Source: Macrostomum lignano
Lineage: Eukaryota
DNA length: 29,497 bases
Reading direction: 5' to 3'
Assembly: GCA_002269645.1 (NCBI GenBank)
Contig: NIVC01000796.1
Location: 1 to 29,497 of the forward strand
The position numbers and the translations under genes were made by a program. The notes beneath the pieces are model-generated. The model was not told the DNA's origin. It saw nothing but the letters and a program-made list of their open reading frames with translations, and did no database searches. Position 1 is the stretch's first letter. Each line of letters begins with the position of its first letter. This document shows, in pieces, positions 114-29,497 of the stretch.

Positions 114-1032
114 GTTAAAGTTAAGTTAAGTTAAGTCAAAGGCTCTAATGTTCGCGCCTGCTAAAGCCGCAGAAATTATGTGGATTATACGAGTTGTTGG
201 TTGCTTGCAGCGGGCGGGGTACAGAAATGCTGGACCTCTTTAAGAATGAACAGTGGCGATGGTGAGGGGGGGAACGGTCTGGGTCTAGAGTCTGCGATCG
301 ATGCATAGTCTATGGTTTAAACCCCCCCCTACTAAAACAGTACACTGAGTGTGTCTAACGAAGTAGAGAAGAGGGACGGTCCGGGGTCTATAGTCTATGG
401 TTAACCCCCCCCCCTAAAAGCAGCACGCTAGCTGAGTGAGTCTACAACGAAGTATTGAATCGATACTCAAAGTATACAGTTTAGTAGTTCCAAAAGGTGG
501 TTTTCAAAAGGAGATGTAGATTGCTTGTTTCATATATTTCAAAAAGAGGGTGTCGAAAATCGCAACGAGATTAATACTTACTACCGCCGGTATTGAGACT
601 GTAAAATTGTATATACGCGGCACATTAGCCACAACAAAACTGCAGACAACAACAATATTGCAATATAGAAACCCACGAGAATGGAAATGCCCCAAAAATA
701 CCCCTTTAAGTATGAAACAAGACGAACTGGTGCTATTCCTTCCTTTAAAAGCGATAACTAAAAAACACACAAAAACAAAGGGAAAGTATAACTGTTACAG
801 CTACTAATCGCCTCTGCATGGCTTGGATGTGCCATTTATCTTTTTATGGGAATGTTGCTAAGCACAATTTCGCGATAGTGCTACTGTGCCAACACGCCTT
901 ACGGAAATGTATGAAAATGAATGTAGCACTTTTCCGATGTTTTGTCTGGCACTTTATCCTTAGTTACAGTAGCGTTAAGGCTCTAATGCTCGCGCCTGCT
1001 AAAGCAGCAAAAGGTGCACATAAAGCTGCAGA
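75..1032 (+). repeat. Degenerate direct repeat pair, about 75-175 and about 902-1032
   Basis: Both contain CGGAAATGTATG..ATGAATGT.GCACT..TTATCCTTA...AAGGCTCTAATG.TCGCGCCTGCTAAAGC. Confidence 0.8.
275..465 (+). repeat. Two degenerate tandem units of about 90 bp containing ATAGTCTATGGTT and a poly-C tract
   Basis: ATAGTCTATGGTT(T)AA(A)CCCCCCC...CTGAGTG.GTCTA..ACGAAGTA occurs twice. Confidence 0.7.
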
Positions 1033-1353
1033 ATAGTTGAATTTTTACTGTCCCTGCAGTGGCTCGTATAATAGCTGTAACACGAAATTGTTGGAACTTG
1101 AACGGCCAAATGTGAACTTTGTTGCGTTGCTGACGCACGAGTAATATTACCTAGCTTTGTGTTTACCTGCGTTCTACGGCGCATCCTGCACTATGTGAGC
1201 AGCCTAGCAACAACAACAAAATCCACTACTAATGCATATAAGGCCGGCTTGATTGCTAGGAGGGGAATCGGGATTTGGGAATATTTAAGGGCAGGGAAAG
1301 CAGTGCGTCATCGTTTATCTGCCCCGTTGTTCATCAATCCAGCTAATCAAGCT

Positions 1354-3811
1354 CTAATCAGACTCTGCGCGAGCATCATCCTGCAGCTGGCAGCCGGTGC
1401 ACCGGAATATGTCGTGCTTCACGTGAATACACTGGCCGCCGGAGTTGACCCGCCTGACAAAGTCTATGGGCAGATCGGCGGGAGGGACATGGCCAGCGAG
1501 CATCACCGGGCCGCTCCATTCAGTCAGAATGAGGGCCTTGTGCTTGGCGTTGATGGTAAATTTATCGCGATTGAGCAGCAGAAGCAGCTGCTGCGAGGAG
1601 GCCTGCGAGACGCTTAGCTCATCAAAGAACAGACACCTATGAATGCCCAGGCGCAGACCGTCGAAGGCAAAACCCTCGTCAAGGTTCGGAGTGAATACGG
1701 TCTCACGACCAAAATGCAGGCCCACCATTGCTGATTTGCCCACTCCACTGGCACCCCATAGGTACAGGATTGAGGGCACAACTACAGTCTGCCGCATCGC
1801 TGTGCAGATTGCCTGCTGAATCGCGCAGCTTCCACCTAGCGCGATGCGGTGTGTTGCCACATTGCTGCACCCCGGCTGATCCGTATTTGAAGCGGCTGTG
1901 TCGCCGCGTGGAGGCACCTGCATGCATTGTACAGGCAGAGGGTGACATGCCCCGCACATACTCGGCCAGACAATGGTGCTGGGGAGCAGTGACACGCCGT
2001 GCTCTTCGGCACGAATTCTGCGCATCTGTTGCACCGTTGTAAAGTAATCCATGGTCTGCTTCAAAAGCAGTGGATTACCGCAGACGAGATGGGGGTCGTC
2101 TGGTCGCGGTGCCATACTCCCCAGCGGATATGACATAGCCCATCTGTACAGTTGGACAACGCGGGACAGACAAGCGTCGTCGATTTCGGTGATGGCGGCT
2201 GTGGGGTCGTGCATGGTCACCCGTCATATTTCGGCAGCTGCTGAGCGCACGCTCCTGATCTCGGCGCATGTCCATCCCTGCACCGCAAAGGTGTGCAGGC
2301 TGGAGCCAGACGCGAAGAAGGAATTGTGCATGGCATTGGATCGCAAAAATATCAACAGCGATCGTGTCTTGTCCACAGGGCAAGATGGAGTCGGGGCGTA
2401 CGCGTCAGTCATGTGCGCGGGAGTCAGCATAAATTCGTTATCTGCCAGGCCTTATTACATACAGTAGTAGTAGTTGTTGTTTGTTGTGGTGGCGTTGGGG
2501 GATGGGTTAAAGAGTTTCTTAAAATCGCATGTTCTACGTAGAAGATAATTGTTATGAGTTTTTCAGACACTTGTGAAACGACGCAAACACTCACTCACTC
2601 ACCTATGGCAAACTGTGTCGCGAAGTCGCCGCTCCAGGTGCCGTTGATCATCAGCTTCATCTGGGGCGCGTTCTTGACGTAGTACAGCTGAATCACCGAC
2701 ATTGCACGATGCGAACGCCGGCTCGCATTAGCCGAAAACATTATGTCGTTTGGTATGGTGTCGCTGGGATGCAGCGACACGGACGATGCCAGAAGGCGCG
2801 AGCTCGTTCCCTTCGGCGAGGTGCTAGCCGGCTGCTGCTGCCGTTCCTCCCCCTCTTCGTGGAACAGTGGGATCTCGCCGGCCGGGCAGGTCGTCTCTGC
2901 GAGGTTATATTTAGCTGTCGCCTCCATCTCCCTGGCCGCCAGCTCGTAGCCAGAGGCCAAAGCCCGCTCGCGCTGCGTAGCACTCGACTGCGGTACGGCT
3001 GCGGCGGTGGCTCCTGTGTCGTCGGGAAACAACAATGTGAAAATGATACTACTGTAATATGAGAGAATGTAGCATGAGCAAAAGTGTGAGCGCGAAATGC
3101 ACGTAACCTACCTCTCGGGTAGAACGTCGTCGGCGGGCGGCTCGACCGAGGTCTCGGTGAGGCTGTCGGCGTCATGAATCGGAAGGCAGCAGTAGGAGCA
3201 GCAGGGCGAGTGGTGAAGCGCCAGGGCGCGCCGATGCCGCACGGGCCGATCCTAGGCTGCCGTAGAAGGTGCGGCTTCGGTGACGCTTGAGCAGCAGCGG
3301 CAGCAGAGTCAGTAGTATGGAATGAGGGCGACGCCTTCGGAATAAACTGCAGAGTCGGCGGCTGGTCGCCGCAGCCGGCGACGTGGTCAGCAGGATGCTG
3401 CTGCTGTTCGTCGTCGCTACCGCTGCTGTAGACAATTAATCGCGGCAGCTTGTTAAGCAAGCCGCGCTGCTGGCTTGGTTCCGGCGTCTCATTGGCTATG
3501 ATGCGCCGAGAGGGCGTTGCGCTGCTCGTCTGCGGCGTGCTGACATCTTCTAATAGCATCCGCCGGCGACTGGGTTGCTGCTCCTCATGAAAAGTAGTAA
3601 CAGCAGCGGCAGTTTCCAACTCCTTCTCATGACAAGTAGCAACAGCAGCGGCAGCTTCCAACTCCTCCTCATGACAAGTAGCAACAGCAGCGGCAGCTTC
3701 CATCTGCAGTTGCTCCGCCTGCCGCTCTTCAGCAGCAACTTGTTCTTCGAGCTCGAGCTGCTCTTCCACACTTAACATTATCTCGTCGTCGTCGTCGTCG
3801 AACATGCTCAC
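1354..3811 (-). pseudogene. Spliced gene: acidic low-complexity N-terminus plus CRESS-Rep-like superfamily 3 helicase (disrupted)
   Basis: C-terminal part has Walker A LYLWGASGVGKS (about 1732-1770), FAFDG (WxDGY-like), Walker B CLFFDE, B' LLLLLNRDKFTINAK, motif-C-like PVMLAGH and Arg-finger-like DFVRRV. Two frame-restoring introns: 3111-3052 (GTAGGT..TTACAG, 60 bp) and 2602-2442 (GTGAGT..CAG, 161 bp). One in-frame TGA at 2226-2224 and a frame discontinuity near 3250. TATATAAA on the minus strand about 100 nt upstream of the ATG. Confidence 0.8.
3585..3710 (-). repeat. Three tandem 42-bp (14-aa) coding repeats in the helicase-gene N-terminus
   Basis: AAAAVATCHEEELE / AAAAVATCHEKELE / TAAAVTTFHEEQQ. 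Confidence 0.85.
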
Positions 3812-3909
3812 GATGCTGCTGCTGGAACTGTGTGAGACGATGCGCTATTCTTCTGCGATCTAACCATAAAGACTGCTGCTCTGCTTCTACTAGAAGGGGG
3901 AAGCTTAAG

Positions 3910-3987
3910 TTTATATACATTAACCTATAAACTTAATGTATATTAATACATTATTTATACATTAATACATTGTATATTAATGTATAA
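3910..3987 (-). promoter_or_regulatory. TATA box and AT-rich hairpin upstream of the helicase gene
   Basis: Minus-strand TATATAAA at about 3917-3910. Perfect 13-bp arms TTATACATTAATA / TATTAATGTATAA (3955-3987) with a 7-nt loop. Confidence 0.5.
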
Positions 3988-4030
3988 CTAAAGACTAGTT
4001 ATAGTCCCTAATATGAAATGCGCTATCCCA

Positions 4031-6850
4031 TTAACCATGAGCTGACGGATGGCCCAAATTCGGGTCATGGCTCAACACCCAAAGCCAACGGGGAATTTTT
4101 TTATATCTATGGCCAAAAAACCAGCAAAATTAGCACACCCGTTCTGGACTGATGTGGCCCGAAATCGGGTCAAGTAGTGGCCAATAAGATAGTGAAAACG
4201 CACTTAGAAAAGATAGACTGTAACAAAACAAAGTAATTTCAATTACTCATATATTTTTCTTCTGTTTAAAAGTTAACGACTTAAATTATATTAGAACATA
4301 GTGAAGTGGGGTCATTTTTTTAACTGGAGTGGTCAAAAATGGAGGGAAGCTGTCACAATTGTCACGCTGTCACGTCATTTTCTGTAGAGTTGATTTTAGA
4401 AAACTTTTAGAAAACTGGAAAGAAACAGGTAATACAAAACAACAAGCATCTAAATTTATTATAACTCCAAATTAATACGGAATAATGTAATTTCTATCCA
4501 CGATAATGCAACAAATATATTATTTTATTTCAAGGGGCCTTGGTGCTAGGACTGAGGTCTAGGAGCTGAGAGACCGGGTCCCTGGATTGATTGCGAATCC
4601 TCGCCATCTCTAACACCCCCTGCCTCCCCCGTCTCTGCGCCTGCGGTTATCACTGTGCGAATCCGCCCCTTCCTATTGTAATTCCCTCACCTCTACCCCT
4701 GTGCTCATGACCCTACCCTCTTCTACTGTTTTCTGATTCCTACGTCTCATATTAGTAGTTTCTGTAACCAGGACAATTTCTGGACTATCTGTAACCAGGG
4801 GCTGTGGTGGCACCAATTCAAAATGAAGTCAAAATAGAAAGGCAAATTTGCGGAAAGGGTGGATACTACAATATTTTCTATACTGTCTAATACACATCGC
4901 CAGGCGTCAGACCTAATTGGTTTGAAATTGCATGAAGCAAGCACCAAGGCAGAGTGCTGGCGTTCCCGGGCAAGCTTCGCATACAAACACTGTCTTCTTC
5001 ACTTGGCCAGCCGCATAGCATACTCGGCATCGTTTGCGTGGCCGAGCCTGGTCCCTGTGTCTGGGAGCTTTGCTTGGAGAATGAGCAGCAGCTCCATTGC
5101 CTACAGCACCGGCAGCTGCTCCATCTGGCATTCGACCGCGTCGCCTGGCAACACCAGTGTCCTCCAACAGATATTTGACTGCGAGCCTTATAAACTGCAA
5201 GAAGGTCTTTGTGCCGCCCGATTGCTTGAAGATGACCCAGGCATTTCTCACAAGCATCAGGAAAAGGTGGAACCCAAGCTTGTGGAACCAGCGCATGCTC
5301 TTACGATTGGCTAGGTAAGGGTGCATTGAAGCGTCCAGATGGTCAACACCACCCATGCTGGCACAGTATGCTAACACACTTACAGGCTTCGGCACCACCT
5401 GCACGGCACCTCCACGACGGGTACGATGGACCTGGATGCAATAAGCTTTTCCTGCTGTATCTAGCAGATACACAGTTTTTATGCCGCTCTGCTTCCTGTC
5501 GACAAATTTGCAAGCCAGTAGGTTCCCTGAGCGAGCGAATGCAGATGAACTCGGATGTAGGTTGGCAGCTTGCAGTTCAGCTGGGATACCGCGGTTTTTC
5601 CGTACTGTTCCGGTTAGCAGCGTATCATGCTGCAACAGCCAAGTAGCCAGCCGCTGAGACTTAAACCAACTGTCGGTCAAGACGTGGTGTCCAAGATTAA
5701 GCAAACTGCGGCACAGTTCTGCAACAACCTTCTCACTCATCGTCAAGTCCTGACACCCGAGGCCTTCACCGAACTGATTATTGACCTCAGGGAATGTGTG
5801 GACGACGAAGTTCCATAAGTACGCACTCTCACTCTCACAGATACAATACATTTTAATTCCGTATTTACTTTTCTTTGTTGGAATGTACTGTTTAAAAGCA
5901 ACTCTGCCCTTGTACAAAACGAGTGTCTCATCAACCGACAGTCACTGCCGTGGCATGTAATTGTTGCTGCACAGATGCTTTACGCTGTGCAGAAAGGGCT
6001 CCATCTTTGCCAGAGGGCCATCTCCTAAAGCCTCAGCGCAGTTGTAAAAACGCAGGCAGGACAGCAGCTGCTTGAAGCGGTCTCTTGAGAGCGAGAATGG
6101 CTTGGCCAGAAGGGAGCAATGAAACGCTGGATCGGTTGACCAGTAGTTGGCGATTTCCGGCTTCTTGTCGACACCCATCAAAAGCACGATTCCAACTAAC
6201 GAACTTCATCCGTCGTTGAGTCCCGCCATTTCAACACTTGCTTCGGCAGTGCAGCCTCTGTTTCGGCTTCTTGAAAGATTCTCCAAGCCTTAGCATTAGT
6301 CCAATTGCTGAGGTCTTCGAACAACTGGTCTGAAAAAAAAGCTTTAGGAAAGCATCTTCGTTTCCATCAGCAGTTGGTGGAGGCTGCCAGTCTGGTCGGA
6401 TGCCAGGTGTTCCGAGAAAATCGGGTAGGGCTGATGGCCTGTTGTCCTCATTCGGTTGAACCATGTGCCACCCACCGGCTTGCTCGTTGTTCTCAGCGAT
6501 GTCCATCTCATCGTCCTCAGACCATTCGAAAGTTTCATCAGCGGTGGAATACTGACTCGACGAAGTATCAGAGTCGAAACTGGCGTCTGAATCTATGTAT
6601 GTATATTTGCTTGAAACAGAAAATCTCTGTGCAAACTCTACGCGCAGGCAGTCAATAAGTATAAGTGAAGTCTATGTAGAAACTCTGTGGTACTTTAGAA
6701 ACTTTTCCCGGCGGGAATGGGTGTGAGCATTACAAGAAAAAATTCTAAGAAAAAATAAGAATAGAAAAAATTTGTCAATAAACTTGCCCCGCTGTTGTAA
6801 ATTCGGGCATACACAGTGTATATTTGGGCAGTCGTAGACTGTACATTGTA
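4031..6850 (-). mobile_element. piggyBac DNA transposon (decayed; right end uncertain)
   Basis: TTAA-CC start at 4031. Subterminal GGCCC(A/G)AA(A/T)TCGGGTCA repeats near 4050 and 4156, and a related motif near 6800. Contains the transposase pseudogene. No clean matching TIR plus TTAA found at the right end. Confidence 0.7.
4913..6590 (-). pseudogene. piggyBac (PGBD-type) DDD transposase pseudogene
   Basis: YWSTDP, SRDRFKQLLSCLRF, LSVDE (D1), YIPTKKSKYGIK, TDSWF (D2), MGGVDHLD (D3), C-terminal Cys-rich CRVC..CEAC..LC..CF. Broken by a frameshift near 6340 and in-frame stops near 6200 and 5942. Confidence 0.95.
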
Positions 6851-7101
6851 TCCGGAAAAAGGAGGCAAAGCGGGCAGCCGTGTAATCGCGGGATGCGGTG
6901 AGTATATGCGGGCACGCTATAAAGAGACTGTATAGAAACACTATAGACTATAAGATTATTGCATTGCATAATGTGGCTGCTATAATAAAAAAGCGAGCGA
7001 GACATATGACACAGTAGCTAATATAACAATGTAAACGTTGTATATATAAATATAGACATTCAATTAGAGCAGATAACAGAAGCACACAATGGGATGGGAG
7101 A

Positions 7102-7250
7102 TAGCACAATCGCGGCACAGTGCCCAGCACAATTCCCGTTAAATATACGCGTAGCTAAGCGCAGCACAACTGTATTGTCTGACAGACAGCACTACTCACC
7201 GGCTATTAATTTAGGGGAATTGTGTTAGGCACCTTGCCGTGATTGTGCTA
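7102..7250. repeat. Imperfect inverted repeat: arms of about 43 bp, 64-bp spacer, two GCACAAT boxes per arm
   Basis: Reverse complement of 7102-7144 (ATTTAACGGGAATTGTGCTGGGCACTGTGCCGCGATTGTGCTA) aligns with 7209-7250 (ATTTAGGGGAATTGTGTTAGGCACCTTGCCGTGATTGTGCTA). Confidence 0.9.
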
Positions 7251-7359
7251 GCACTACAGCTACTATTGCTACTAGAGTGTTAAAAGAACAAAAGTAGGTG
7301 CACACTACAACTACTACAGTGTACTATAACTAGAATTAGTAGGCGGCTGAGGTGAGGCG

Positions 7360-7419
7360 AGGCAGATAAGAAATTGTGCTTGGCACCGGAGGTGCCAAGC
7401 AGCAATTTCAAATCTGCCT
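7360..7419. repeat. 60-nt hairpin
   Basis: AGGCAGAT-aag-AAATTGTGCTTGGCACC-gga-GGTGCCAAGCA(g)CAATTT-caa-ATCTGCCT. Confidence 0.9.
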
Positions 7420-7768
7420 GTGGTAATTAAGTACACACTAGCTATAGAGCGTAAAAACAGCAAGAATCGGGGACTGGCAGCTATTTATGGCCAATAGATT
7501 GTAGCTATACAATCAGTCAATAGCTGATAGCCTGTGTGGATAATAGGCGTAGGGGTATATGATGCTGAACGCGGATGTTACAACAAAATAAATAGCCAAC
7601 TATCTAGACAAAGAGGGAGCAAACACAACCTGCACCACGCGTAGTGCAACCACCACAGTGTCACATCGAGCGTGCAATGAAACATAGGGAGAGAAACAGC
7701 AACGACACATACATAAAAGGAGACGGCTTCCAAAGGTCAGACACATGCCTGTCGCAAAAAGTCGCTTA

Positions 7769-9326
7769 TTAGACAGAGGCCGACACGCGGCACAATTTAG
7801 GTTTCTTACTGCCGTTGCGTCTGGCTTTGCAGCCGGACGTCGCCGCCGCCGCATCGGACCAGTCGAACTCCGCCGCAGCCGCCGCCGCTGCACTGGACAG
7901 CAACAAGGAGCGCGTGGCGTCCACAGCAGCCCGCCGTTTCGACGCGAGTTGCGGCACTGCAACCACCTCCGAATGCCGCTGCTGTTGCTGCCGCTTCTGC
8001 GACATTGGCTGCTGCCGCTGCTGAGTCGGCAGCTCCTGCGAGACCCGAGCGGCGATCAGCTCCCGCTGCTGCTGCTGCTGCTGCTTCTGGGACGTTGATG
8101 CTGCCCGCTGCTCAATCATTCCGCTGACGGTGACCTGCATTTCTGTACGACTGGCGAGCACAGCGTTCGGTGCGTAGTGTCGCATAATCATGGTTGTCGA
8201 AGTCTCATACAGCGCCGCCATCTGCTGTATTAGATCAGGGTTGTTCGCCATGACGACGTCCTGCGTCGAGCTGCGGAACACAGTTGGCCCGACGCCTTCC
8301 CGATGTAGGATGCCAGCTGCTCCGGATTCCACAGCGTGGCTGAATGTCGACGGAGACATACGCGTGCCATTGCGGGTGCAAAATACAAAGACCTCGTCAT
8401 CATAGGCGCAGTTGCCGAAGCTCGCGCCTCGACGCCACTTGCGGAGCATCTCGACAAAAGAAGTTGGCAGACAGAGCACGCTGCAACCGACAGACTGGCG
8501 TTTCTTGTGGCAAAGCCTATCATTGTCCCGCCTATAGATGCTGTTTGGCTCCAAATAGGCCAGGCGAAGGCCGCACCATGGCTGGATGCGCAGAGGATGT
8601 TGTACCGTGGCATGCAGCGCAAACCGATTGCGCAGCTGGACCTCCTCAGCGTTAAGGCGGACACCGCCGCTGCCGCTCAGCGCCGCGACAGTTTCGTCAT
8701 CGTCTTCGTCATCTTCGTCAACCTCGATATCGCCAGACTCGTCGCCGTCACCGCCGCCGCCGCCGCCGCCGCCGCCGCTGCTGCCGCCGCCGCCGCTACA
8801 TCGGCACAACCGATGGGTTAGCAGCAGCGGACTCCAGCCGTTGACGCTTCGGCTGCAGCGCTGTCGGGGCACTGGTGAAGGCCTCCTCGTCGGCGAAGAG
8901 TTCCAGCTTGATAGTAGCCGCGACCGAGCTTCCTTCGTTGAACGAGTCATCTTCATCACTGCTGGAAGGCACCACGACGTTTGACACCTTCGTGATGACG
9001 CATTCATCGTCCGCGGCTGCGTTCGATTCGGCCTGGGTCGCTGGCGCGAGCACGACAGGTAGCACTTCCGGCGCCGCCGTAGCAGCCGCCTCAGCAGCGC
9101 TGCAGGCAGCCAGAAGTTCCGCGTCGAAGAAGACGTCTTCTTCGTCATCGTTAGCCGTTGGCTGGTTTGATTCGGTGGCGGCAAGATCGGCTGCAGTCGC
9201 CATCAGGTCGGCATCTTCAGCTGCATAGGCAGCTTCGAAGGCCGCATCGATTTCCGCATCGGTCAAGGGGTACCACACGACCGAGTTGTTGCTGTTGTTG
9301 CTGTTTTTGTTGTTGCTATAGCTCAT
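7769..9326 (-). pseudogene. Tyrosine-recombinase-like gene, copy 1 (acidic N-terminus plus catalytic domain; frameshift near 8800)
   Basis: HPLR (Arg), HKK (Lys), PTVFRSS (Arg) and MRHY (Tyr nucleophile) appear in YR order and spacing. The acidic N-terminal ORF 9326-8796 is in a different frame. Clear paralog at 27911-28906. Confidence 0.7.
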
Positions 9327-9904
9327 AGTTGCGTTAAAAGCAAATTAATTCTTTTAAATTCGAGTGCTGCAGTTTGCTGGAAAGGAGGCAGGATAATTAC
9401 ACTAAGAATTATTAAGCAGCACTAAGCTTTACTTTTAAAATATACAAGTTGTAGAAACAGTAACTAGATACTTATATGCATACGAGTTTTTTTACTTATT
9501 GAAGTTGGCCAATAGATTATTGCAGCGGGCGGGATGCTGTGCGTTTCACCCCGTTTCAACACGCCTAGGCTAACTATAATATTTGATATATTGCGATACG
9601 GCAGATAGTTTGGGCCCTAGACAAACCTACTGGAGCAATTGGAGATTTTAAAGCTATTAGTCCTATTTGTCTATCGCCGGTCGGCGAATCCTACCAAGCT
9701 TTCTTCAATAGTCGCAGATACGGTACAAGAAAATGAATAACACGGTTGAATGCAATTCCAGATAGATTTAGATTGAGTGGTGTTCCTAATCTGACAGAAT
9801 GACTGACAGAGACTTGAATTGAATCCTTTAATTTAATTAACTCCAAATATACACGGATTGAAATAACGCAATTCGCAATTTAACACTTGACAAATGATGT
9901 ATAT

Positions 9905-10038: not shown

Positions 10039-10254
10039 CGTACTTAATCTACAAATATTGGAAGCGACTGGGAGTGGGAGAGAGGTATTCGTCAAAAGCG
10101 GGGGTGTGGGCCCCCCACATTTAACCATAGACAAAAATTAAAGTAAAAGGTTCGATGCTTAAATTAAAAGCGAGAAAGGAAAGGTTTGGGCAGCTAGAGG
10201 AAATCAGAGAGAACTGAGAATCATGGAACGCGACTTGGAACTCGCTTTCGACTG

Positions 10255-10545
10255 GTGAATGACATTGAACTGAGAGAAAACGAGGCTTCTAGATTTGCTT
10301 TACTGTCCGATAACGAGGTTGCTGAAAGGATTGACGCTGCTGTGCCGGAATCGACACGCCGGAAGGAACGATGGGCACTAAAGCAATTTGACGACTGGTT
10401 TCAGGAGAGGCAAACCAAACTGCTTCATGGAGACGCCTGCGGTCTATCTGTGTCTACCTATCGGCCGGCATACTCTCGACTCCAATTGTGGCGAATATCA
10501 CCAAACCCGTGTCTACGGATGGTAAATTCTCAAACCAGTCTCTAA
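10255..10545 (+). pseudogene. Crypton-like (KCTD1/ZMYM-related YR) N-terminal fragment
   Basis: RFALLSDNEVAERIDAAVPESTRRKERWALKQFDDW resembles the Crypton core-binding N-terminus. Catalytic domain absent. Confidence 0.65.
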
Positions 10546-11769: not shown

Positions 11770-12340
11770 CTGCGACACAATGGCTCCGCTGACTCTCCAG
11801 TCAGACCACCGACTTCTGCTCGGCGACTTGCGGCTCCGCGACCAGCTCTACCGACCGCCAAAGCAGCGACCACGGCGCTACTATCACGCTCTGTTGGACA
11901 CCCGCGTCAAGCGTCAATTCGCGGGCGCCTTCGTAGGCGCGCTTGGAGACCAGCGCGAGGCGGAATATTCCGACATCAGCACCGTCGTTGGAGCCGCTGT
12001 GGAGCAAACGGTTCCGCTGATGCGGCCAGCGAAAAAATTGCTGCCTGTCTGGCAGAGCGACCCGACCATCAAGCAAGCGCAGGCTCAACATCGAGCGACT
12101 CCGCAGAAACCGGTGGCCCACAGGCGACGCTGAAGACGCGTCTGAGCGCCTTCTAGACGAGTGGCAGCAGGCCGCTGTCAACGACGCCGTTAGGTCCATC
12201 ACTGCAGCCGGCCGCTGTCAACGACGCCGTTAGGTCCATCACTGCAGCCGGCCCAGACGTGATGAGCCGCGTAGTGGGGACGGCCGTCCGGACTCTGACG
12301 GGGCGCAAAAGGCGCGTGGCGCTGAATCTGACCGGTGACA
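11770..12340 (+). mobile_element. Non-LTR retrotransposon fragment (end of APE endonuclease plus linker), decayed
   Basis: SDHRLLLGDLRLR endonuclease C-terminal motif. After removing a 40-bp duplication the linker reads VRTLTGRKRRVALNLTGDT. Confidence 0.65.
12171..12250 (+). repeat. Exact 40-bp tandem duplication
   Basis: GCCGCTGTCAACGACGCCGTTAGGTCCATCACTGCAGCCG occurs twice. Confidence 0.95.
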
Positions 12341-12821: not shown

Positions 12822-13787
12822 AAATTCTCATGTTTGAACAGCCAACGCTCTGGGCCGCTTCAAACAGTGATCGGCTCGGTATTGGTCAGCAGGTTTTGTT
12901 AAGCTCTGTCAGGCTCTTTCGGCTGTTTTGCTGTGCAAATGCCTGATGTGGTCGAGTTACACGGACCATCATTAGAAGATTCTAGTGCAGCTGCATGGCT
13001 AAGCTGTTTAAATTTTCATTGGTCAACTGCGTTTTGCAGTAGATTGCAGACGCTGAAATTGCAGGATACATTTATCGTCGGATTGAACTCTCACTGTATT
13101 GTAAGTAATGTGATGCACATACAACTGATAATAGTACGACTAAAGTAATAAAAAGACTATTTAAGTAAAACTGTAGCTAAAATATGCAGAATGTATGACT
13201 ACATAGGTTATAAGGGCAGATGGCACCGTTGGCGACGGTTAAGTAGTTTAAAAATGCAAGCAATTTAAAGATTGATGTGTACTGTTGTAACATACAGTAA
13301 TATTATTGTGCATTGTGTCTATGAAATTGCACTCAATGCGTATTATTCCTATGGCGAATACCTGCTGCTCCTTTTATGTTGCGTGTTTTGCTATTATGCT
13401 TTGTAAGCAGGAGTGGGTGCATAGGAGCTGAAGAGATACAAGACAGAACATGGCCCCTGTAGCATAAAGTGTATCTGTTGTGGATCCAATTTAAAAAAAA
13501 TTGATATACGCGCCATGACCCTTTAATATACGCGCTAGTGTACCTACTACTGAGACTACCAATATTAAAACGATAAGAAATAAATGAAAGCTAAACGCAG
13601 CAGAAAAGGTAAATTTGTAACTTTACTTGCGCCAACTGCACAGGATTTTCACGATAATATGAAGGAGGGGAACAGCATTTACTTAAAAAAGATACCCTCC
13701 TCCTTTTTCAACCGGGCTTGGGACTGGCTTTGGCTTTTACCCATCCACCTCGTATTCTGTATCAACTGTTCTAGACTTGATCGAAGC

Positions 13788-14027
13788 TTTATTACCCCTC
13801 GCATTAAAGATTGGCCCGCGTAGTCAAATAAAAGTGACTACTCTCATCATGGCGGGACTTTATTATTACCCCTCGGATTAAAGATTGGCCGCGTAGTCAA
13901 ATAAAAGTGACTACTCTCATCATGGCGGGACTTTATTATTACCCCTCGGACTAAAGTTTGACCCGCGTAGTCAAATAAAAGTGAATATTCTATCAAAGCG
14001 AGGCTTTATTACCCTGCGGATTAAGTA
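13788..14027 (+). repeat. Tandem repeat, unit about 73 bp, just over 3 copies
   Basis: ATTACCCCTCG.A.TAAAG.TTG.CC(C)GCGTAGTCAAATAAAAGTGA units start at 13791, 13865, 13938 and 14008. Confidence 0.95.
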
Positions 14028-15579
14028 TTGCACATTCTTTTGAATTTTTGCCCCTCTTTTAACTTGGAAGTTCCATTCACTTTAGACAACCCATGAGCAT
14101 GCCCAGACTTGCATGCCCAGACTGAAGACTAGATAGCGTCTGCCTTAATAGGATAATCTGTGTTTAACTCACTGGGCCTGCTGGAACATAATTGGAACTA
14201 TGCTACAGATTTCGGCTAAGACACCCAGCTGTACAAAACAATATACATAGTTTGTGTCTTGGCCTAATGACCGACGGACGGGATGGGGAGCGGGTCCTCC
14301 CGCCGGAGACACCCAAGGTCCCAGCCCCAACCCTGGCTATGCCTACGCGACCCTGACCGACCCGGCGAGATTTCGCCCTGGCCGATCACCCTGGGACTAG
14401 CGAGAGTTCGCCGACCTCAGGTTCCTACTCAATCCCACCGGCCCCTCGCGGCAACCCAGAAGAAAGAAGCGCGAGCTCACTCCTAGTCATCGATTTAACA
14501 GCTTGACGAAGCGTATATTTGGCCGACCAAACGCAGAGCAGCACAAACAGCAACGGACGCAGAACGCAGACAAACAGACAAACAGTGGGGCGCAGAACGC
14601 GGAAAACAGTGGAGCGCAGAACAGACAAGCAGTAGAGCGCAAATCGCAGACAAGCAGTGAAGTGCCGAATGGGCAGGGCGAGAACTTAAATAGAATACTG
14701 TACACCAGAGGGGGGTAGAAAGGAGAGGGGCAGGCCAAACCCTGGGGCTTAAGGCAGCTTATCAGCCCGCCAGTCAATGCGAGAGGCCCAGGGTGGGGCG
14801 GAGCAAAGAGGGAGGGGTAGGGCAAGCGCACAGATTGGAAAGGGGACTGGGCGCAGAAAAGACTAGGCCATGGTAGAAGCTTACGCCTCATAAACCCCGG
14901 CAAGGGCGCGAGACGGTGGACGGGGCGGCGCAGCATGAAAACACGAAAACAAAAACAAGGGGCAACAGAAGGGCAGGGTAGACTGAAAGGGCGCTGCACA
15001 AGAATAGGATGCTTCAGAAGTAATTAGAATAGTCTGAGTGCAACACATCCAAAAGGCATCCTCATTTGTTGTATGGTACAGTACACAGACTACATGCTAA
15101 CGGGAGTCAAACCTTTGTACACAATAATGCAACTACCTTGCACTAAATGCAAATTAGTAGAGTATACAAAGGATGGTTGCGACCTCACATTACGAGCAAT
15201 ACAGTTTCAACAAGTCCTTTATTTAATGCAGAGGTTTAGCGCCACTGACTAGGTGGATTCCAGGGATAGCTTGCCGGGGTAGCTTGTTATGTCATTAAGT
15301 ATGACAGCCTTCCATCGGAAGCACTCTTATTTTATCCCTAACTTTCGAATCTTGTCTTGTCATGATTCGGACCTTGTTATTTGGTAAAATTCGGATTGCT
15401 CACCAGATTAGAGTCAAACCAGATAACATTAAAATTACCTGGTAACGAATCTGGTGGTTTTACCAGTTTCGCACCCTAAACAAGCATTGGAAGTATAGTG
15501 AATCTGACAAGATTCGCAAATTATCTTGTGGTGTTATCTGGTTTATTTTCCAGAGGGAGTGAGCTAGCTACCGGTTAGG

Positions 15580-15630: not shown

Positions 15631-15849
15631 TTGGCACCTCGTCTACGTCGCGGAGGGTAGCCGCTTCATCTGGGGGCGGTCAAAGAGCGCCAAAACTCGG
15701 ACACAACGTCGAACGAGCGAGTTTTTTGTATTTACACTCTAAAGAATCTCGCTCAAAGCGATCATCCACCAAGCCGCGGGAGCGCCCTGCTCATCAACGC
15801 AAGCGGAACTCTACGTGGTCAAGCTGGCCTAAATTGGCTCGAAGGGCGC

Positions 15850-16440
15850 ACCAGCAAAGGAGAAAGCACCGTGATCATTAGCGACAGTCAGAGCACTCTA
15901 CAGGCTATTAAGGGCTTGAGCAGAAACACCTTGGCCATTAGAGTCAGGAAAATGCTGAGGAAGCTGGAGGAGGAAGAGAAGGTGGTTAAGCTAATCTGGG
16001 TGCCCGCGCATTGCGGCTTGACAGGAAACGAGTTGGCGGATGAAGCAGCGAAAGAGGCATCAACCTGGGCCCAGGAAGGCATCAAAGTGCCACCCAGCAG
16101 CAACAGGAAGTACAGCCAGAGCAAGCTGGGCAGAGATAACGGCAGAAGCCACAGGAGAAGCAGGGAAACCTATGGAGAGCAGGGGGCGGAGCCCCAGCCG
16201 AAGGGCCTGAGCAAGCAGGAAGCGTTTGACTTCAGACGATTCAGGAGTGGCCACTCTATGGACCTAGCAGAGTACAGGAAGCGCATAGGTAGACAAGAGG
16301 AGGGCTGGTGTACGAGCTGCGGCTTGGAGACCGAGACGCTTGAGCATGTCATGGCGTGCCCCGTCACGCGCAGCCTTAGGGAGGAACTGGACCTGCATGA
16401 GATTCGAGTCTTGAGTAGGAGACCAGGGAATCTGCAGCGT
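15850..16440 (+). mobile_element. Non-LTR retrotransposon 3' fragment: RNase H plus C-terminal zinc knuckle
   Basis: IISDSQSTLQAI and LIWVPAHCGLTGNELADEAAK (RNase H); RFRSGH...CTSCGLETETLEHVMACP (CCHC). Confidence 0.9.
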
Positions 16441-17665
16441 CAGAAACAGCACCTCAAAGATTGGGCACCACGCTTAAAAAGGCCCTTTTCCGAGCACAAT
16501 CTCCCTGGCGTCGATACAGACGAAAACATCGCACCTGTATCCATCGACCTGAACTGTCCGTGACAATGTATCGGCTTCAAACTTGTCTTGACACTTTCTG
16601 AACAAGGAAGGGGACATCCGAATCGAGAAGACAATTGCAATTTTGCATGTTCGAATCATATTAAATTCAAGTGGAAGCAAAAATCATTTCGTAATACTCA
16701 CATACCAGGTACTGATGTTGTAATACGATAACAACAGCTTAATTACTTCCAGCGCAGAACTATTAGCTTATTTTCCCGTAGTCTAACCAGGCTTGTATCG
16801 ATAGAATCCAGGACAAGAATCTTTCGTCGCTTAGCACACACAACGATAAGATAAAAGTGCTCCTTGTGTAAAAAAGGATTTAATGTCTTATTCAAGCCCT
16901 GGGAAATATACAGTGAACTAGAAAATTACGAGCTAAAAACAACTTTGCATTTGAGAAATGCTAGAGTTACTACGAATTTACTTTTACATACATGTTACAA
17001 GAAAAAGCAATTATTCGTACCTTATACACTAAAGTCCTTTTCGACAAAATTTTCCTCTTAAAAGTAATATTGTTATTATTGATATCCAAAATGCTGTGAA
17101 AGTCTCCCTTGCCAATGACAAATTCGTTGGTGCGCCTGAAGTAAGTGCTGTGCAGTAAGCCGGTAATATCTACACCTTTTTCCATTCTATTTTGGCAAAC
17201 GTGCAATCAAAGTCAAAATCTTTTCATTCAATTCAGACAGTTTATGGTAGTTCTTGGCCGGACGTGCATTCAATTCCGACAAATGTGCTTTCAAAAGCGA
17301 CAATTTTCAAACAAAGCAAACAAGCTACCACGAGAAACCGACACTTTGCAATCAATTCAAACAATTTGCAATCCATTCCGACAGTTGGCTATGAATTGGC
17401 TTTTTTCTGTCCTCCTATCTATGGCTCATACTAATACGCTCGTAATGCCGAATGCAAAAGTGAGTGACAACGATCGGCAGAGGCTCATCGACGCACACGC
17501 AAACGGAGACGATTTTGGGCATCTTGCTCGAGTATGTACTCCAGTGGCTTGTCTAAATAGATTGAAATTTGTCGGAATTGATTGGAAATTTCGCAGTATG
17601 AGCCATAGATAGGAGGACAGAAAAAGCCAATTCATAGCCACTGTCGGAATGGATTGCAAATTGTT

Positions 17666-18530: not shown

Positions 18531-18907
18531 TGAATTGATCGCAAAGTGTCGGTTTTTCGTGGCAGCTTGTTTGCTTGTTTGAAAATTTTCTAGTTTGAAA
18601 ACTAGACGGAGTGGCCGAGGGCGGCTATAGGCTGCAGTTAGGCAGACGATGGAGCGGCGATGCGCTGAAGCGGCGAGGCGCTGGTGTCGTTCAGGCATTG
18701 CTGATGATGATTGGCGGTAACAGACCGCGGACCGGCAGACGAGCTCACTTGGGGAGCTGAGATAACTTGGCGGTAACAGACCGCAGACCGGCAGAGGTTC
18801 GTCTTATAGACGAATAGGTCAGAGCAACGTCTGACAGCAAGTCCACAATAGGACGCTTGAGAAGAAGCGCGAAAAGGTTTGAGGATTCTCATGCCGAAAA
18901 CCGCTTC

Positions 18908-24277: not shown

Positions 24278-26744
24278 CCGGTGTTTTTGGCCCGCTCGGA
24301 CTGCAACCTTCTTGCGACCGGGTGCTACCCTTGGCTCCACCGGCCAGGGACTGACCGTCGTTTCTTGATCCCCGGATTGCGACTTCCCCCCGTCATCATC
24401 AAGGACGAATCCCCCCGGTCATCAGCACTGAACATCAAAGTGAAGAGCATCACCTGCTAGCTATCAGCGAAGATTGTGACATCAGCATCATCCCGGGCCT
24501 ACAGCTGCGAAGCACTAAGCCGATTCGGTCACCGTGGATTACCTGGTCTCCGGCTGTTGAGTTTCTGATTGGTTAGGTGAGAGGCTGCCCAAGGACTTCT
24601 AGACTAGCTAGTCTAGCTTGAGGCTGCCTAGACTTGCTAGATTGGGTGATTCCTTATCTGTCCCCTGTTTCAGTAGCTGGATTAGGCGTACACTTTTGCT
24701 CATTTTGTTCAGTAGTGCTGTAATCGAGGCAGAAGTCATTCAATAATACTGCTAGTAGTCTAAAACTCCAATTCAATCTGAAGTGTGAAGTGATCTAAGG
24801 AGAAGGTTAAATCTAACAGTTATTTTTATCGGTTTTATTCCTTTGTTCGCCGATGGCTCAGATGAATAGCTAAGCTAGTAGGCGCCGGTCACAGTGGACC
24901 AATGGCAAGGCAGTTCTCAATCGATCAATCTATCAAATAAGTTAGCGAAACTGCCAGTAGTGCAGAATCGGCGCCAGAGATGTTCTTTGTGCACTCTAAG
25001 TTCGCCAAGCGGCTCGGGTAATGAATCATGCGGTCTCTGAAGTTCGAGTTAGTCTATCATCAGCGCTATGAGAGGCTAGTTGGCGCGTTGAAGGCCAGAA
25101 GTACAATTCCTCGTATTTAGCAATGTAATAGTACATGTAGCTACCCCATAGTCTCGCCACTGCAAGAATCCCTGCACAAGTCCCCTATGTACCTGCATGG
25201 CCAATGCGATCTAGTCCCAGCAGTGTCCCTTATCATCGGCTATGACTTCGAGATTGACAGCAAAAAGACACTAGTTGGCAGGTAAGTGCAAAGCCCCTTC
25301 TAGTCGGAAGCCCGATTTCGAGAGTCCCGGTGTGGTGGGCCAGGATATACGGGCTGGTGGCAGCGAGTTAGCTAATCTGCGGATTAACTAATTTCTACCT
25401 TCAAAATTCTCCCTGCTTGTCTCTCGCTGTCCCTCTCTTAGCTATAGGACCTAGACTGCTCGCCACACGATCAAGCTACCATGGGCTGACCATCTGACAG
25501 GAGTGGGGGGCCGGGACTCTAATTGATTTATTTCTGAGACCTGAGGCCTGAAGGCTTCCCCAAATGGGGGCCGGAAGGTCGAAACCCATCAAATTCCCCT
25601 CGCACCACCGTTCGACGTAAACAATGCCAGTGAGGCCGCGAAAAGAGCGGCCGGAGTCCAGCGCCGGAACGCTATCGCCGACATCATGTTCAGGCATGGG
25701 CCATGACAAACTGCGTCGCTATCCGTACTGACTTACCTCATGCTGCTTACGTTTGCTGTTTTTTATTTGTCTATTGATAAAGCCACGTTAAAGTCTAAAA
25801 CTTGATAAAGCCACGTTAAAGCGAGCGTTAAAGTGTCAACCCCAGCCTGTATATGGACATTCAATGTTATCCTGCCGAGTGCGTTAATGTGGGCCATAGA
25901 GAGTGCGTGAATGCGGTTGCGGCCATAGACAAAAAGAGTAACTATGTTTTATCATAGAACTTGAAACATAGAGGAGATTGAATACATGTATATTATGACT
26001 GAAGGTGGTGTATACGACAATTGCAAACCAAGCAATTATATAGAAAAAGAGTAATAGCACAATTGCGGCAGTGTGCGTAGCATAATTCCCTTTAAAGAGT
26101 ATATAGATATAGATATGTATATGTACCTGTAGCTGGTACTTATAAAAATGGCTGGCTGGCTGGCTGGCTGGCTGGAAGGCTAGTGGCTATATTTTCAGGA
26201 AATTGTGCTTAGCATAATTCCTAAATAGTGCGCGACATACCAGCTAGATAGATAGCAAGCAGCAAGTAAAATTATCAATATGCAATTGTACAGCTATTTC
26301 AATATAGTTATAAATGCCATGCAACATTGAGCGCTATTTCAAAGCGCTTTGAACCCTTCAACCTGCAGCCATGTCCAACCAACCAGCCGACGAAGTAGTA
26401 GCTACTGCTAATATTAAAACCAACACTATACGACTATAGTCTAATAAACGCTAGGAAAAAATGTTATAACAATGGGCACGTAAACAATAAGAGAAAGGGA
26501 TAGAACGCATAGCAACGCGCGCAATATGAGGCGAAGATGCATTGTAATTACGCTCGTATGAGATGAAAATATTGAAAAATATTGGGGCCAACATACATAT
26601 AAAGAGAGATGAGACAGTTACAACAAAAAAGAGAATCATCTACATTTCACTATTACTAATTAATTCAGTTATGTTAATAGCAGCACTTATTAATTAATTA
26701 ATTTACCCAAGAACACTCTAAGTTTGCATAAAAATTTGCAGCAA

Positions 26745-26912
26745 TGGTAAAGCGCACATTTACTAGATTTCATATAATGGTAAAGCGGTATTTAAAGTTT
26801 TAACGTTGTGGTAAAGCGGCCAACAGTTGAAATTTGCAGACAATGGTAAAGCGGTACTATTTAAAGTTTTAACGTTGTGGTAAAGCGGCAAACAGTTAAA
26901 ATGGTAAAGAGG
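26745..26912 (+). repeat. Six TGGTAAAG(C/A)G repeats with spacing of about 33 bp
   Basis: Starts at 26745, 26778, 26809, 26844, 26878 and 26902, partly within a duplicated unit of about 66 bp. Confidence 0.9.
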
Positions 26913-27016
26913 CGGTAGACGCGCAGCATGCCTTGAAATTGTGCAATTTTAGGCTCTAGTGAATTGTGCCATGCCATTTTCAGACAGCAGTATATCTATT
27001 ACTATAACTAATTGTA

Positions 27017-27050
27017 TCATCATCATCATCATCATCATCATGATCATCAT
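27017..27050 (+). repeat. (CAT)n microsatellite
   Basis: About 10 CAT units. Confidence 0.9.
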
Positions 27051-27910
27051 TGATTTCAAATTTATCGAAATGCAGCTGGATGGCACAATTCCATATTTAT
27101 GCGAAGCACAATTTCGTAAAAATATATATACGAATTAGATATTATAATGAGAATTAGCTAACAAGAAGAAGACACAACTAGCTTGGGTCTGCAGCAGTCA
27201 GCCGTAGAGTCTTGATTATTTATATATATCAATATATATAATTTAGGGAAATTGTGCTAGGAACTATTTGGGAATTGCGCTACTGGGTAGCTATATTCAC
27301 TAACTAGTAGACGACTACAAGCAATCTATACTGGCATAGAACTCTGTATAGATAGATAAACATAGCAACTGTTGAATTAGGAATTTCTATAATTATTAAA
27401 AAAGATTTGTATGCAACAATTTACATTATAGCTTTGTCGCAATATTGTCACAGCTATTGTACCGACGATTAAAGTTAGACATTAAATCATCAATGACATA
27501 AACTATTGGTAAGGTAGCTATAATCCGCAGGTTTTGACAGCCTGGGTTGGATGCGTGCGGTACCTGCGCATAATCAATCAATCGATTGATCCCAAAATTA
27601 TGCCGAGCACAAATTATTATCCGTTTCAGAATTATAGTCGATTAGATGAGCTACTACTGCTGTACGTGTTAGTTTATTAACTAGCTATTTAGTTGCGATC
27701 TGCAGGTCATCTCACGCAACACCATGATTAATATGCAATAAATGAATATATATATTTCTAGGGGTATAATTGTGCTCTCGTCATAATTTTGGTATTTCTG
27801 CTGCTGCTACTGCTAAAACAACAACTCTGAGTCTGGCATGCTATAGTCTGGTATATATTCTCTCACCGCCGTTGCGTCTGACACAGAATGCCAGACGTCG
27901 GTGCAGCACT

Positions 27911-29157
27911 CTAACTGATTGTCGTCTTCTTCCTCTTCGTTTGTTGTTGCTGCTGCAGCAGGGAGCGACTGGCCTCGGTAGCCGCTTTGCGCTTCGATTG
28001 GCGTCGCTGACGCTCCATCTGTGTTACTGGTTGTGATAGAACGCCCATCGACATGATCCCCGACGACGATTCTTTGTCTCGACTCTCGAGCAGTGAAGGT
28101 GATACTGTCGCCGGGGCGGATGCTCGCTGAAGGTTTGGCTGACGATGCTCGCTGAAGTACCAGCTTGCGACGGTGGCTTGAACGACCGTCCGATTGTTCA
28201 GCATGGCGTTGGCCGCGTAGTGGCGCATCAACATTGGCACAGAGGTTTCAAATAGCGCCGCTGACTGATCAACCAACTCCGGCCGCCCGCCAGCCACAAT
28301 GTCCTGCTTGGAGCTCCGAAAAATATTCGGGCAGACGCCGGAACGACCGAGTATAGCTTTGGCATGATCGACAACCGCCTGGCTGAAGGTGGAAACGGAC
28401 ATCCGCTCACCTCGGTTGGTGCACAGCACAAACGGCGAGTTGGCGACGCCGACCATGTCGTTGCAATGACGGCCGTTTCGCCAGGTGAGCAGCAGCTTAA
28501 TGAATGCGGTCGGCACTGTGAGAACGCTGCAGCCGACAGACTTTATTTTCTTATGGCTGACCTGGCGACCAGGCAGCCGGATGGTCGAATAGCCGTTGTC
28601 ATGATTGTCGCGCCGACTGGCGCTACCCGGCCGGATGTGCGCTATGCGGAGACCGCGCCATGGCCGGACGCGCAGCGGATGCATCGCAGTGGCATGCAGA
28701 GCAAATCGATTGCGCATCTTAACAAAGCTGTCCTCGTCGGCTGGACCAGAGGCGACCAGTGCGGCGTAGTCGTCCAGGATGGTGCGCCACTCTACCGGGG
28801 TTAACAGCTTCTCTTTCTTTCTGTCGTGGTGCAGCGGCGCATCCAGCCTATACTCAAGGTCGTGCGCTGGCGAATAGTTTTGAGCCGCTACTGAAACAGC
28901 TTGCACCTGTTTTCCAGCTCGGCTGCAATGTCGGCCGGCAGTTGCATGCGCTCCACGAGCGATTGAAGATGCGCGCGGTCGTGCTCAACGTAGGCTAGCA
29001 TGTACTGCATGCATTTTATTAGCGCTTGCGCCCTGTTTCTAACTGTGCCGGAGCTATTGCTGGTGGCTCGAACCTCCGTTGCGGCGGTCGTTGGGTTGGC
29101 TAAGCAATAGACTAAATCTCGCGGCTCGACGACTGGACAGCTCTTGTCGGCGGCGCC

Positions 29158-29190
<33 letters not shown>

Positions 29191-29497
29191 CATCTTTGAG
29201 CAGACCGACAAGATCAGCAAAAAGGTGTCAATGAGAGCGTCAAGATGGCCGTCATAGGCTGGGTTGCGCACGCCTGTTGCATCGTTCCAATACAATGACT
29301 GGATTACACGCAGCTGCTTTATCAGCGGAGCATCGGCCGAATACTGCGCCAATAGCGAGGAATGCGCAGTGTAATCACAGCAAGGCATCACCCGCCGCGA
29401 TCGCCTCCTTGGCTGACATGGTCGTCGTCTTTGTCGTCGTCTCCGCTGCACCGCCGACGCTGACTGCCGCAGTCGAAGACGCGCTTGTCGCCGCCGT
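27911..29497 (-). pseudogene. Tyrosine-recombinase-like gene, copy 2 (core-binding plus catalytic region; frameshifted; 5' end beyond the window)
   Basis: HPLRVRPW, HKK, PNIFRSS and MRHY. The upstream frame SSGTVRNRAQALIKCMQY resembles a core-binding helix. A 1-nt frameshift near 28905 (AAC AGG TG) and another near 29385. Confidence 0.75.

Follow-up and report, generated by a model that had tools for sequence, protein, structure and literature searches.

A Rep-derived helicase gene, two tyrosine-recombinase-like genes and a family of inverted 9-bp sites side by side in a Macrostomum lignano contig

Contig NIVC01000796.1 of assembly GCA_002269645.1, which is Macrostomum lignano Mlig_3_7 (PMC10733133), was analysed over its full 29,497 nucleotides; this stretch is called the window below. 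The window is eukaryotic, 29.5 kb long and rich in transposon debris, and many of its open reading frames (ORFs) have no family match in Pfam. On the minus strand it carries a gene for a superfamily 3 (SF3) helicase and two genes resembling those of tyrosine recombinases (YR1 and YR2), and sites of the AGCACAATT family lie 3′ of each of them (Table 1). A preliminary description of this DNA had joined the helicase gene and YR1 into one candidate mobile element. The two genes are indeed co-oriented, as stated there, and the distance between them, given as about 4 kb, was measured as ∼3.96 kb. Nothing beyond this adjacency and one shared 24-bp site ties the helicase gene and YR1 into a single element. 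What remains is two moderately novel gene families and a site family that is real and unexplained.

Table 1. Positions of the features under discussion, numbered as in the window
Feature	Position	Strand	Remarks
Single degenerate 24-bp AGCACAATT-family site	849..872		∼480 bp 3′ of the helicase stop codon
Rep-derived SF3 helicase gene	1354..3811	minus	Exons 3112-3805/3811, 2603-3013 and 1354-2450; broken by one in-frame stop
SF3 ATPase core	1384..1833	minus	Has Walker A, Walker B, the B′ Lys and the Arg finger; no motif C Asn
Candidate oligomerisation domain, a helical stretch preceding the ATPase core	2002..2178	minus	Most conserved part of the close family
piggyBac transposase remnant	4916..6671	minus	Two ORF pieces, 6234-6671 and 4916-5941; insertion ends not defined
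AGCACAATT array 3′ of YR1	7088..7411		Foldback 7088-7260 with two direct sites 23 bp apart per arm; compact hairpin palindrome 7362-7411
YR1, tyrosine-recombinase-like gene	7769..9326	minus	One frame change separates the catalytic ORF from the acidic N-terminal ORF
AGCACAATT arrays 3′ of YR2	26053..27795		Modules 26053-26232, 26931-27282 and 27589-27795, each with inverted site pairs
YR2, tyrosine-recombinase-like gene	27911..29497	minus	One frame change separates the catalytic ORF from the one upstream; 5′ end leaves the window

The helicase gene lies where it had been placed, but it is not a single reading frame, because it is spliced. Two GT-AG introns, 3014-3111 and 2451-2602, have phases that join the frames correctly (three frames read), and the product begins with a long acidic, Ala-rich N-terminal extension. 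Homology to one relative, P0005, extends beyond the upstream boundary of the long helicase ORF, and therefore one in-frame stop lies within conserved coding sequence of the window copy. A longer second intron that would skip this stop was rejected since the homology to P0005 continues upstream of that boundary. A phase-1 intron directly after the motif F-x-I-G is common to the window gene (2602-2603) and to a M. lignano locus, L002 (9530-9531). This shared intron points to a long-resident, intron-bearing eukaryotic gene family rather than a recent replicon.

An exhaustive search of representative proteins with the helicase returned 15 relatives. A close group (P0001-P0008 and P0013, E 4.5e-24 to 2e-9) shares with the window protein the ATPase, the stretch that precedes the P-loop and a His/Cys motif at the C-terminal end. 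A far group (P0009-P0012 and P0015, E 2e-5 to 1e-3) has clear HUH motifs followed by an SF3 helicase; its matches in Pfam were DUF5906, PPV_E1_C and RNA_helicase, with Gemini_AL1 at its cut-off. The two far-group members that were looked up, P0012 and P0015, lie on contigs of 2.3-2.9 kb that also carry a second ORF, as small CRESS-like genomes do. The window helicase itself gave only weak P-loop matches in Pfam. Its Walker A (G-x-S-G-V-G-K-S) and Walker B (F-F-D-E) motifs align with those of the HUH-Rep relatives at SF3 spacing (alignments A2 and A6), and the B′ lysine K96 and the arginine finger R127 are invariant in the close and far groups (alignment A6).

An AlphaFold model built on the close-family alignment had a pLDDT of 75 overall and ∼90 in the ATPase core. 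It shows the arrangement of the SF3 fold, an AAA+-like core preceded by a helical oligomerisation domain. The helical region upstream of the core is modelled as helices at residues 16-30 and 51-74 (pLDDT 86-91), and the window segment 1900-2223 was aligned by hhalign with the corresponding N-region of the close group at Prob 95.8% (E 8e-9). When the model was compared with solved structures by Foldseek, the top matches were papillomavirus E1, B19V NS1 and AAV2 Rep68/Rep40 (E 4e-7 to 1e-5); among predicted viral structures they were CRESS Rep and the NS1 proteins of parvoviruses and bidnaviruses (E 2e-8 onward). The TM-scores of these SF3 matches were just 0.35-0.47. With the helicase family profile the sole whole-domain match in PDB was a ‘Replication-associated protein’, 9pqj (E 0.006). 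The Rep-type sequence relatives, the fold matches and the PDB profile match together mean that the earlier label of a CRESS-like SF3 helicase holds, and the structure model and the sequence relatives support assigning the predicted protein to the CRESS/parvovirus Rep/NS1 class of SF3 helicases.

Several other searches with this protein were uninformative. A word-indexed homology search with the helicase ORF gave no match, the window's own protein included, and the same kind of search with the family alignment returned only one protein, low-complexity words having filled the candidate list. A sequence search of PDB with the single ORF yielded nothing meaningful. Scans of viral contigs with the protein and of metagenome contigs with a sub-alignment of the family yielded nothing.

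The helicase has lost features of a working Rep. At the position of the motif C asparagine (sensor 1) the window protein has A-G-H where the far-group Reps have V-S-N (alignment A6), and of the five close relatives aligned at this position a single one retains the asparagine. No HUH nuclease was detected in the window copy: fragments upstream of the helicase domain, compared with the far-group nuclease domains, reached an hhalign Prob of at most 0.5%, and Pfam gave no match. In the close relatives a Rep nuclease domain survives in degenerate form (hhalign Prob 94%, E 1e-7), and in that of P0005 the residue at the catalytic tyrosine position is not a tyrosine. We infer from the sequence that the gene as it stands could not encode an initiator of rolling-circle replication. 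The window protein keeps the oligomerisation helices and the SF3 ATPase with its Walker A, Walker B, B′ lysine and arginine finger; alone it would be at best a ring ATPase on DNA, and with no nicking of an origin it would not start rolling-circle replication.

Two contigs from public sequencing runs, L005 (1-2347) and L006 (1-2942), each encode a protein with HUH-Rep and SF3 parts, besides a second ORF without a match in Pfam. No terminal overlap was found in either contig. Both are probably CRESS-like genomes that have yet to be characterised, and among the nuclease-bearing relatives of the window helicase they are the nearest.

We also considered where homologs of the helicase gene are located. 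Of the homologs with usable flanks the best, P0001, lies on a contig of 220 kb in GCA_002269645.1. Within 10 kb on either side of it lie COG7, EME1 and a glycosyltransferase, that is, host-gene surroundings, and neither YR similarity nor GCACAATT sites were found in this interval. The M. lignano homolog also has an acidic N-terminal ORF. On the other seven contigs with helicase homologs (0.9-3.4 kb) no YR similarity was found, their flanks being too short to weigh much.

YR1 and YR2 are true paralogs, with 42% identity over ∼290 residues (E 9e-63), as the preliminary description had proposed for the gene at the right edge of the window. YR1 is without the first helix of the catalytic domain, which is present in YR2 (alignment A1). 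Each of the two genes contains a frame break, so we regard both as relics. Short introns were rejected as the cause of the frame changes, because the GT...AG candidates are only 14-19 nt long and the phase was wrong in the one checked, in YR2. The N-terminus of YR1 is acidic and Ala-rich, and the claim that it resembles that of the helicase in composition was borne out.

Most searches with the YR proteins were empty. With YR2 as the query, no homolog was found in a large protein collection, where the window's own proteins were likewise unmatched. None was found in scans of viral contigs with the protein and of metagenome contigs with a YR profile, and YR1 had no tblastn match in phage genomes. 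Pfam and NCBIfam returned nothing for the YRs even at E 10. A sequence search of PDB with the full YR alignment gave nothing meaningful, and with a trimmed two-sequence profile (A3) the top PDB match was an integrase at E 0.56, which is not significant. The PHROG family phrog_1, an integrase, matched YR1 only (E 4e-4). An AlphaFold model made from the two sequences had a pLDDT of 37, and its fold search returned noise.

Profile comparison was more informative. Profile A3, with YR2 as its first sequence, was aligned by hhalign with a profile of eight phage integrases taken from annotated records (A4; lambda Int, P1 Cre and six others). The global alignment was colinear (P 0.0023). It placed the YR arginine of G-L-R on lambda R212 and the tyrosine of R-H-Y on Y342, with the H-K-K region at most one residue from K235 and the arginine of F-R-S-S at most three residues from R311. 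The global score was 17.4, compared with 3.4 ± 2.5 (maximum 10.8) for 100 column shuffles, and the local score was 24.5, compared with 14.2 ± 2.9 (maximum 23.8); in neither case did any of the 100 shuffles reach the real score. Both catalytic histidine positions, the histidine of H-x-x-R and the His/Trp before the tyrosine, are replaced in YR1 and YR2, the second aligning with an invariant glutamate. The earlier designation as an atypical tyrosine recombinase is supported by the colinear Arg/Lys/Arg/Tyr series, and there was no significant match to a family profile in Pfam or NCBIfam. On this modest but reproducible support from sequence comparison, YR1 and YR2 are probably tyrosine recombinases.

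A hydrophobic run followed by serine and acidic residues occurs in the N-terminus of the helicase (∼3400-3440), in that of YR1 (∼8950-8990) and in the C-termini of P0009-P0012 and P0015. This pattern may resemble a SUMO-interaction-type motif.

In the window GCACAATT occurs 13 times, compared with 1.6 expected, and none of 100 shuffles reaches this number; AGCACAATT with at most one mismatch occurs 30 times, compared with 6.3 expected. Twenty of these 30 sites lie in the flanking DNA 3′ of YR1 and YR2 (7103-7372 and 26056-27768). Two sites 23 bp apart form a pair, and such pairs are set as inverted pairs ∼90-145 bp apart, for example 7103/7126 facing 7218/7241 and 27082/27105 facing 27250/27273. 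Compact palindromes of AGCACAATT are found at 7362-7411 and 26199-26222. DNA folding compared with shuffled sequences gave z -8.2 for the hairpin 7362-7411 and z -5.4 for the foldback 7088-7260. A 43-bp arm at 7101-7143 is 84% identical to 26054-26096, while the remaining YR flanks have diverged, which suggests that the sites were conserved along with the gene. These data support a AGCACAATT site family that is real and associated with the YR genes, and the presence of the same family beyond the second YR gene agrees with what had been claimed.

Palindromic sites had been described after YR1 and after the helicase gene alike. For YR1 this was borne out by the folds given above. The site at 849-872, 3′ of the helicase gene, does belong to the family but is not a significant palindrome: alone it forms no significant hairpin (z -0.4). 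Its 16-mer at 856-871 recurs without a mismatch, in reverse complement, at 26199-26214 (blastn E 0.001), and a comparison by eye over the whole site gives 21 matching positions out of 24. A direct duplication of ∼120 bp is found at 72-174 and 899-1012, with 88-92% identity in conserved blocks; its right copy lies just to the right of the 849-872 site, and the left copy has no site.

The YR units would be a Crypton-like recombination unit present in two copies, in which a recombinase-like gene is followed by its own AGCACAATT array. By analogy with Cre, Flp and lambda Int, dimers of the recombinase would bind inverted half-sites, and strand exchange would use the conserved tyrosine of R-H-Y together with the Arg-Lys-Arg residues.

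Between YR1 and the helicase gene sits a piggyBac remnant. It has the transposase domain and zinc finger of that family, with Pfam matches to DDE_Tnp_1_7 (E 3.6e-37, in 4916-5941) and to the C-terminal zinc finger zf-Tnp_2 (E 7e-6), and from its sequence it is a piggyBac member. The insertion reported earlier is therefore correct as to the transposase, but its extent of 2.8 kb was not confirmed, as no TTAA-flanked terminal inverted repeats were found around the remnant. GC content at third codon positions (GC3) is 0.61-0.75 in the helicase gene and 0.60-0.70 in the YRs, and lower in piggyBac (0.47-0.51). All three genes are interrupted: the helicase gene by one in-frame stop, YR1 by one frame change, and YR2 by one frame change in addition to a 5′ end that is off the window. 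There is no second helicase gene in the window, and none lies within ∼8 kb downstream of YR2. No element boundary, target duplication, empty site or second linked copy was found. A search for terminal inverted and direct repeats around 849-9535 gave only two kinds of candidate: the inverted repeats I16 and I17 proved to be low-complexity matches, and a 14-mer common to 205-218 and 9520-9533 was rejected because ∼3 such 14-mers are expected by chance in the window. Capsid, packaging ATPase, protease and polymerase families were not detected by Pfam or PHROG in the window ORFs scanned.

We put at about even the chance that the helicase gene and the YR unit are separate entities, both decayed, which lie next to each other in a transposon-rich region and have the piggyBac remnant inserted between them. 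For the helicase gene the best explanation is descent from a CRESS/parvovirus-type replication protein that has turned into a resident, intron-bearing eukaryotic gene family, and the 24-bp site 3′ of it would be either a stray copy from this dispersed site family or all that is left of a former association. A number of observations weigh against keeping the two apart. The 849-872 site matches the YR2-flank site too well for chance (E 0.001), and all three site locations in the 29.5 kb are 3′ of precisely the helicase gene, YR1 and YR2. The helicase gene and the YRs are co-oriented and have a high GC3 in common, and the N-termini of both proteins are acidic and Ala-rich with a similar motif of hydrophobic run, serine and acidic residues. 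The evidence from unlinked homologs comes from one locus with useful flanks, and that homolog is only 38% identical. In addition, the YR assignment has no support from Pfam or NCBIfam and no significant support from PDB, and its structure model reached a pLDDT of only 37. An alternative is a single integrating element, in which the YR would integrate, excise or resolve at AGCACAATT sites and the Rep-derived helicase would support episomal replication; the copy from 849 to ∼9350 would be old, decayed and hit by piggyBac, and YR2 would be a shorter or truncated relative. The same site family 3′ of all three genes, with its 16-mer identity (E 0.001), speaks for such an element, as do the common orientation and a similar GC3 distinct from that of the neighbouring transposons. 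The acidic N-termini are alike, that of the M. lignano helicase homolog included, and the pseudogene-like state of all three genes is what old copies of an element would show. We nevertheless consider a single element unlikely. It has no second linked copy, no helicase gene accompanies YR2 over ∼8 kb downstream, and the searches revealed neither terminal repeats nor target duplications nor any capsid or polymerase gene. Host genes surround the M. lignano homolog, neither a YR nor a site was found within ±10 kb of it, and the other seven short homolog contigs show no YR similarity. The preliminary description had itself named unlinked homologs as evidence against an integrating replicon, and these were found in part, YR2 standing alone and the M. 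lignano locus having neither YR nor sites. Its proposal that the helicase drives replication is weakened by the lack of a detectable HUH domain and of the motif C asparagine, by the stop and by the introns; the protein has the look of a resident, nuclease-dead derivative, and the intron common with the M. lignano L002 gene argues for long residence as a cellular-type gene. It is doubtful in our view that the locus preserves the decayed remains of a kind of eukaryotic integrating element not described before, which would combine an atypical, His-less tyrosine recombinase, a Rep-derived SF3 helicase and a dedicated family of AGCACAATT inverted sites 3′ of each gene.

All three genes might instead be host or domesticated genes, namely an exapted recombinase and Rep derivatives, with the AGCACAATT palindromes as cis-regulatory or 3′-end elements bound by a host factor and with the frame breaks as assembly errors or the marks of recently dead paralogs. 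The spliceosomal introns of the helicase gene, one of them conserved in position, would fit this, and so would the host-gene neighbourhood of the M. lignano homolog, the high GC3 of both gene types, unlike that of nearby transposon ORFs, and a loss of enzymatic function after exaptation, seen in the two missing catalytic histidines of the YRs and the missing motif C asparagine of the helicase. We find it quite improbable, given that all three genes are interrupted as they stand, that YR1 has lost part of its catalytic domain and that the region around the genes is transposon-rich. Moreover, a conserved host gene should have some homologs, and for the YRs none turned up in the large protein collection or among viral and metagenome contigs. 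It is highly improbable that the window is a piece of a larger integrated element resembling a virus, such as a Polinton-like virus or virophage. Polinton-like viruses with genes for tyrosine recombinases and superfamily 3 helicases are on record (PMC4642659), and here both gene types lie within 8 kb. Against this, the window ORFs scanned contain no capsid, packaging ATPase, protease or polymerase family, the genes have spliceosomal introns, the helicase is of the Rep/NS1 class, and the scans of viral contigs with both proteins were empty.

If the helicase gene and the YRs are unrelated neighbours, each would still be of modest interest. The small, intron-bearing, nuclease-dead family of Rep-derived helicases, with its flatworm member, would be a candidate for exaptation of a viral replication protein, and an orphan tyrosine-recombinase-like family with its own inverted-site array would widen the diversity of eukaryotic recombinase elements. 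If a single element were true after all, it would represent a new architecture of eukaryotic mobile DNA that unites site-specific recombination with a replication protein of single-stranded-DNA viruses. It would then bear on the exchange of modules between viruses and transposons, and it would be a eukaryotic counterpart of the integrase-plus-helicase modules in prokaryotic satellites and integrative plasmids.

Several other features of the window were recorded. An RNase H ORF at 15661-16560 on the plus strand (Pfam E 9e-7) is probably a retrotransposon remnant, and its position and strand are unrelated to the YR genes. The minus-strand ORF 17678-18220 is enclosed by nested inverted repeats in the region 17289-18600; the repeat pairs are 17302-17365/18525-18588 (64 nt, 88%), 17360-17385/17640-17665 (26 nt, 100%) and 17402-17432/17595-17625 (31 nt, 100%). 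Neither this ORF, which has no match in Pfam, nor the plus-strand ORF 10198-10542 has a family match. The sequence pattern of both ORFs may resemble the N-terminal region of some animal recombinase-derived proteins. A 73-bp unit is present in ∼3.5 tandem copies at 13782-14030, and a 40-bp unit occurs twice in tandem at 12164-12243 with 98% identity.

We compared the genes with known systems. Closest to the helicase are endogenous CRESS/parvovirus Rep-like sequences, with which it shares an SF3 ATPase and nearest folds among CRESS Rep, parvovirus and bidnavirus NS1 and papillomavirus E1; its relatives include HUH-Reps on 2-3 kb contigs, and its close relatives keep a degenerate nuclease domain. 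It differs from them in its spliceosomal introns, in the long acidic N-terminal extension and in having no detectable HUH domain and no motif C asparagine. Its close family also has a conserved C-terminal His/Cys motif and is a small family with a member in a flatworm genome. Compared with the Rep of CRESS-DNA viruses, the window helicase is not a functional Rep, as it has neither the HUH domain nor the motif C asparagine. In contrast to a CRESS-DNA virus genome, the gene has two GT-AG introns, no adjoining capsid-like ORF and a eukaryotic chromosomal setting.

Polinton-like viruses and virophages also have tyrosine-recombinase-like and SF3 helicase genes within a few kilobases. In the window, however, these genes are intron-bearing, the helicase is of the Rep/NS1 class and there were no matches in viral contigs. 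No double jelly-roll capsid, penton or packaging ATPase was matched by Pfam or PHROG in the scanned ORFs, such proteins often escaping sequence profiles, and a Polinton-like virus identity is not supported. In a literature search no described eukaryotic transposon was found to encode both a Rep-type SF3 helicase and a tyrosine recombinase; known cases of co-occurrence are those in Polinton-like viruses and virophages. Replitrons were set aside as a match since they are without a helicase (PMC10288648).

Unlike in DIRS and Ngaro elements, no reverse transcriptase or RNase H is encoded in the ORFs adjoining YR1 and YR2, and the only RNase H in the window is >6 kb away on the other strand. Cre/lox of phage P1 and lambda Int/att, which pair a site-specific recombinase with cognate inverted sites, resemble the YR units in two respects. 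The YR catalytic domain is colinear with those of lambda Int and Cre and keeps the Arg, Lys, Arg and Tyr residues in register, and compact inverted repeats and multiple flanking sites adjoin the recombinase gene, as, according to their records, lox adjoins cre and the int binding sites adjoin int. The YR units differ in their eukaryotic setting, in the arms of the larger modules, which are ∼90-145 bp apart with no definable crossover spacer, and in the absence of the catalytic histidines.

Like Cryptons, the YR unit is a stand-alone tyrosine-recombinase-like gene with no adjoining reverse transcriptase/RNase H, and it occurs in two diverged copies in eukaryotic DNA rich in repeats. No element ends were found for the YR units within the window, which leaves them as candidate transposons. 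The YRs differ from Cryptons in having no detectable similarity to any protein in the collections searched and in the replacement of both catalytic histidines. They differ further in that an array of inverted 9-bp sites lies 3′ of each copy, which to our knowledge is not a described feature of Cryptons. By analogy, we believe that the YR unit would work most like a Crypton or a cassette consisting of a recombinase and its cognate sites, and the AGCACAATT sites appear from the sequence to have been conserved together with the YR gene.

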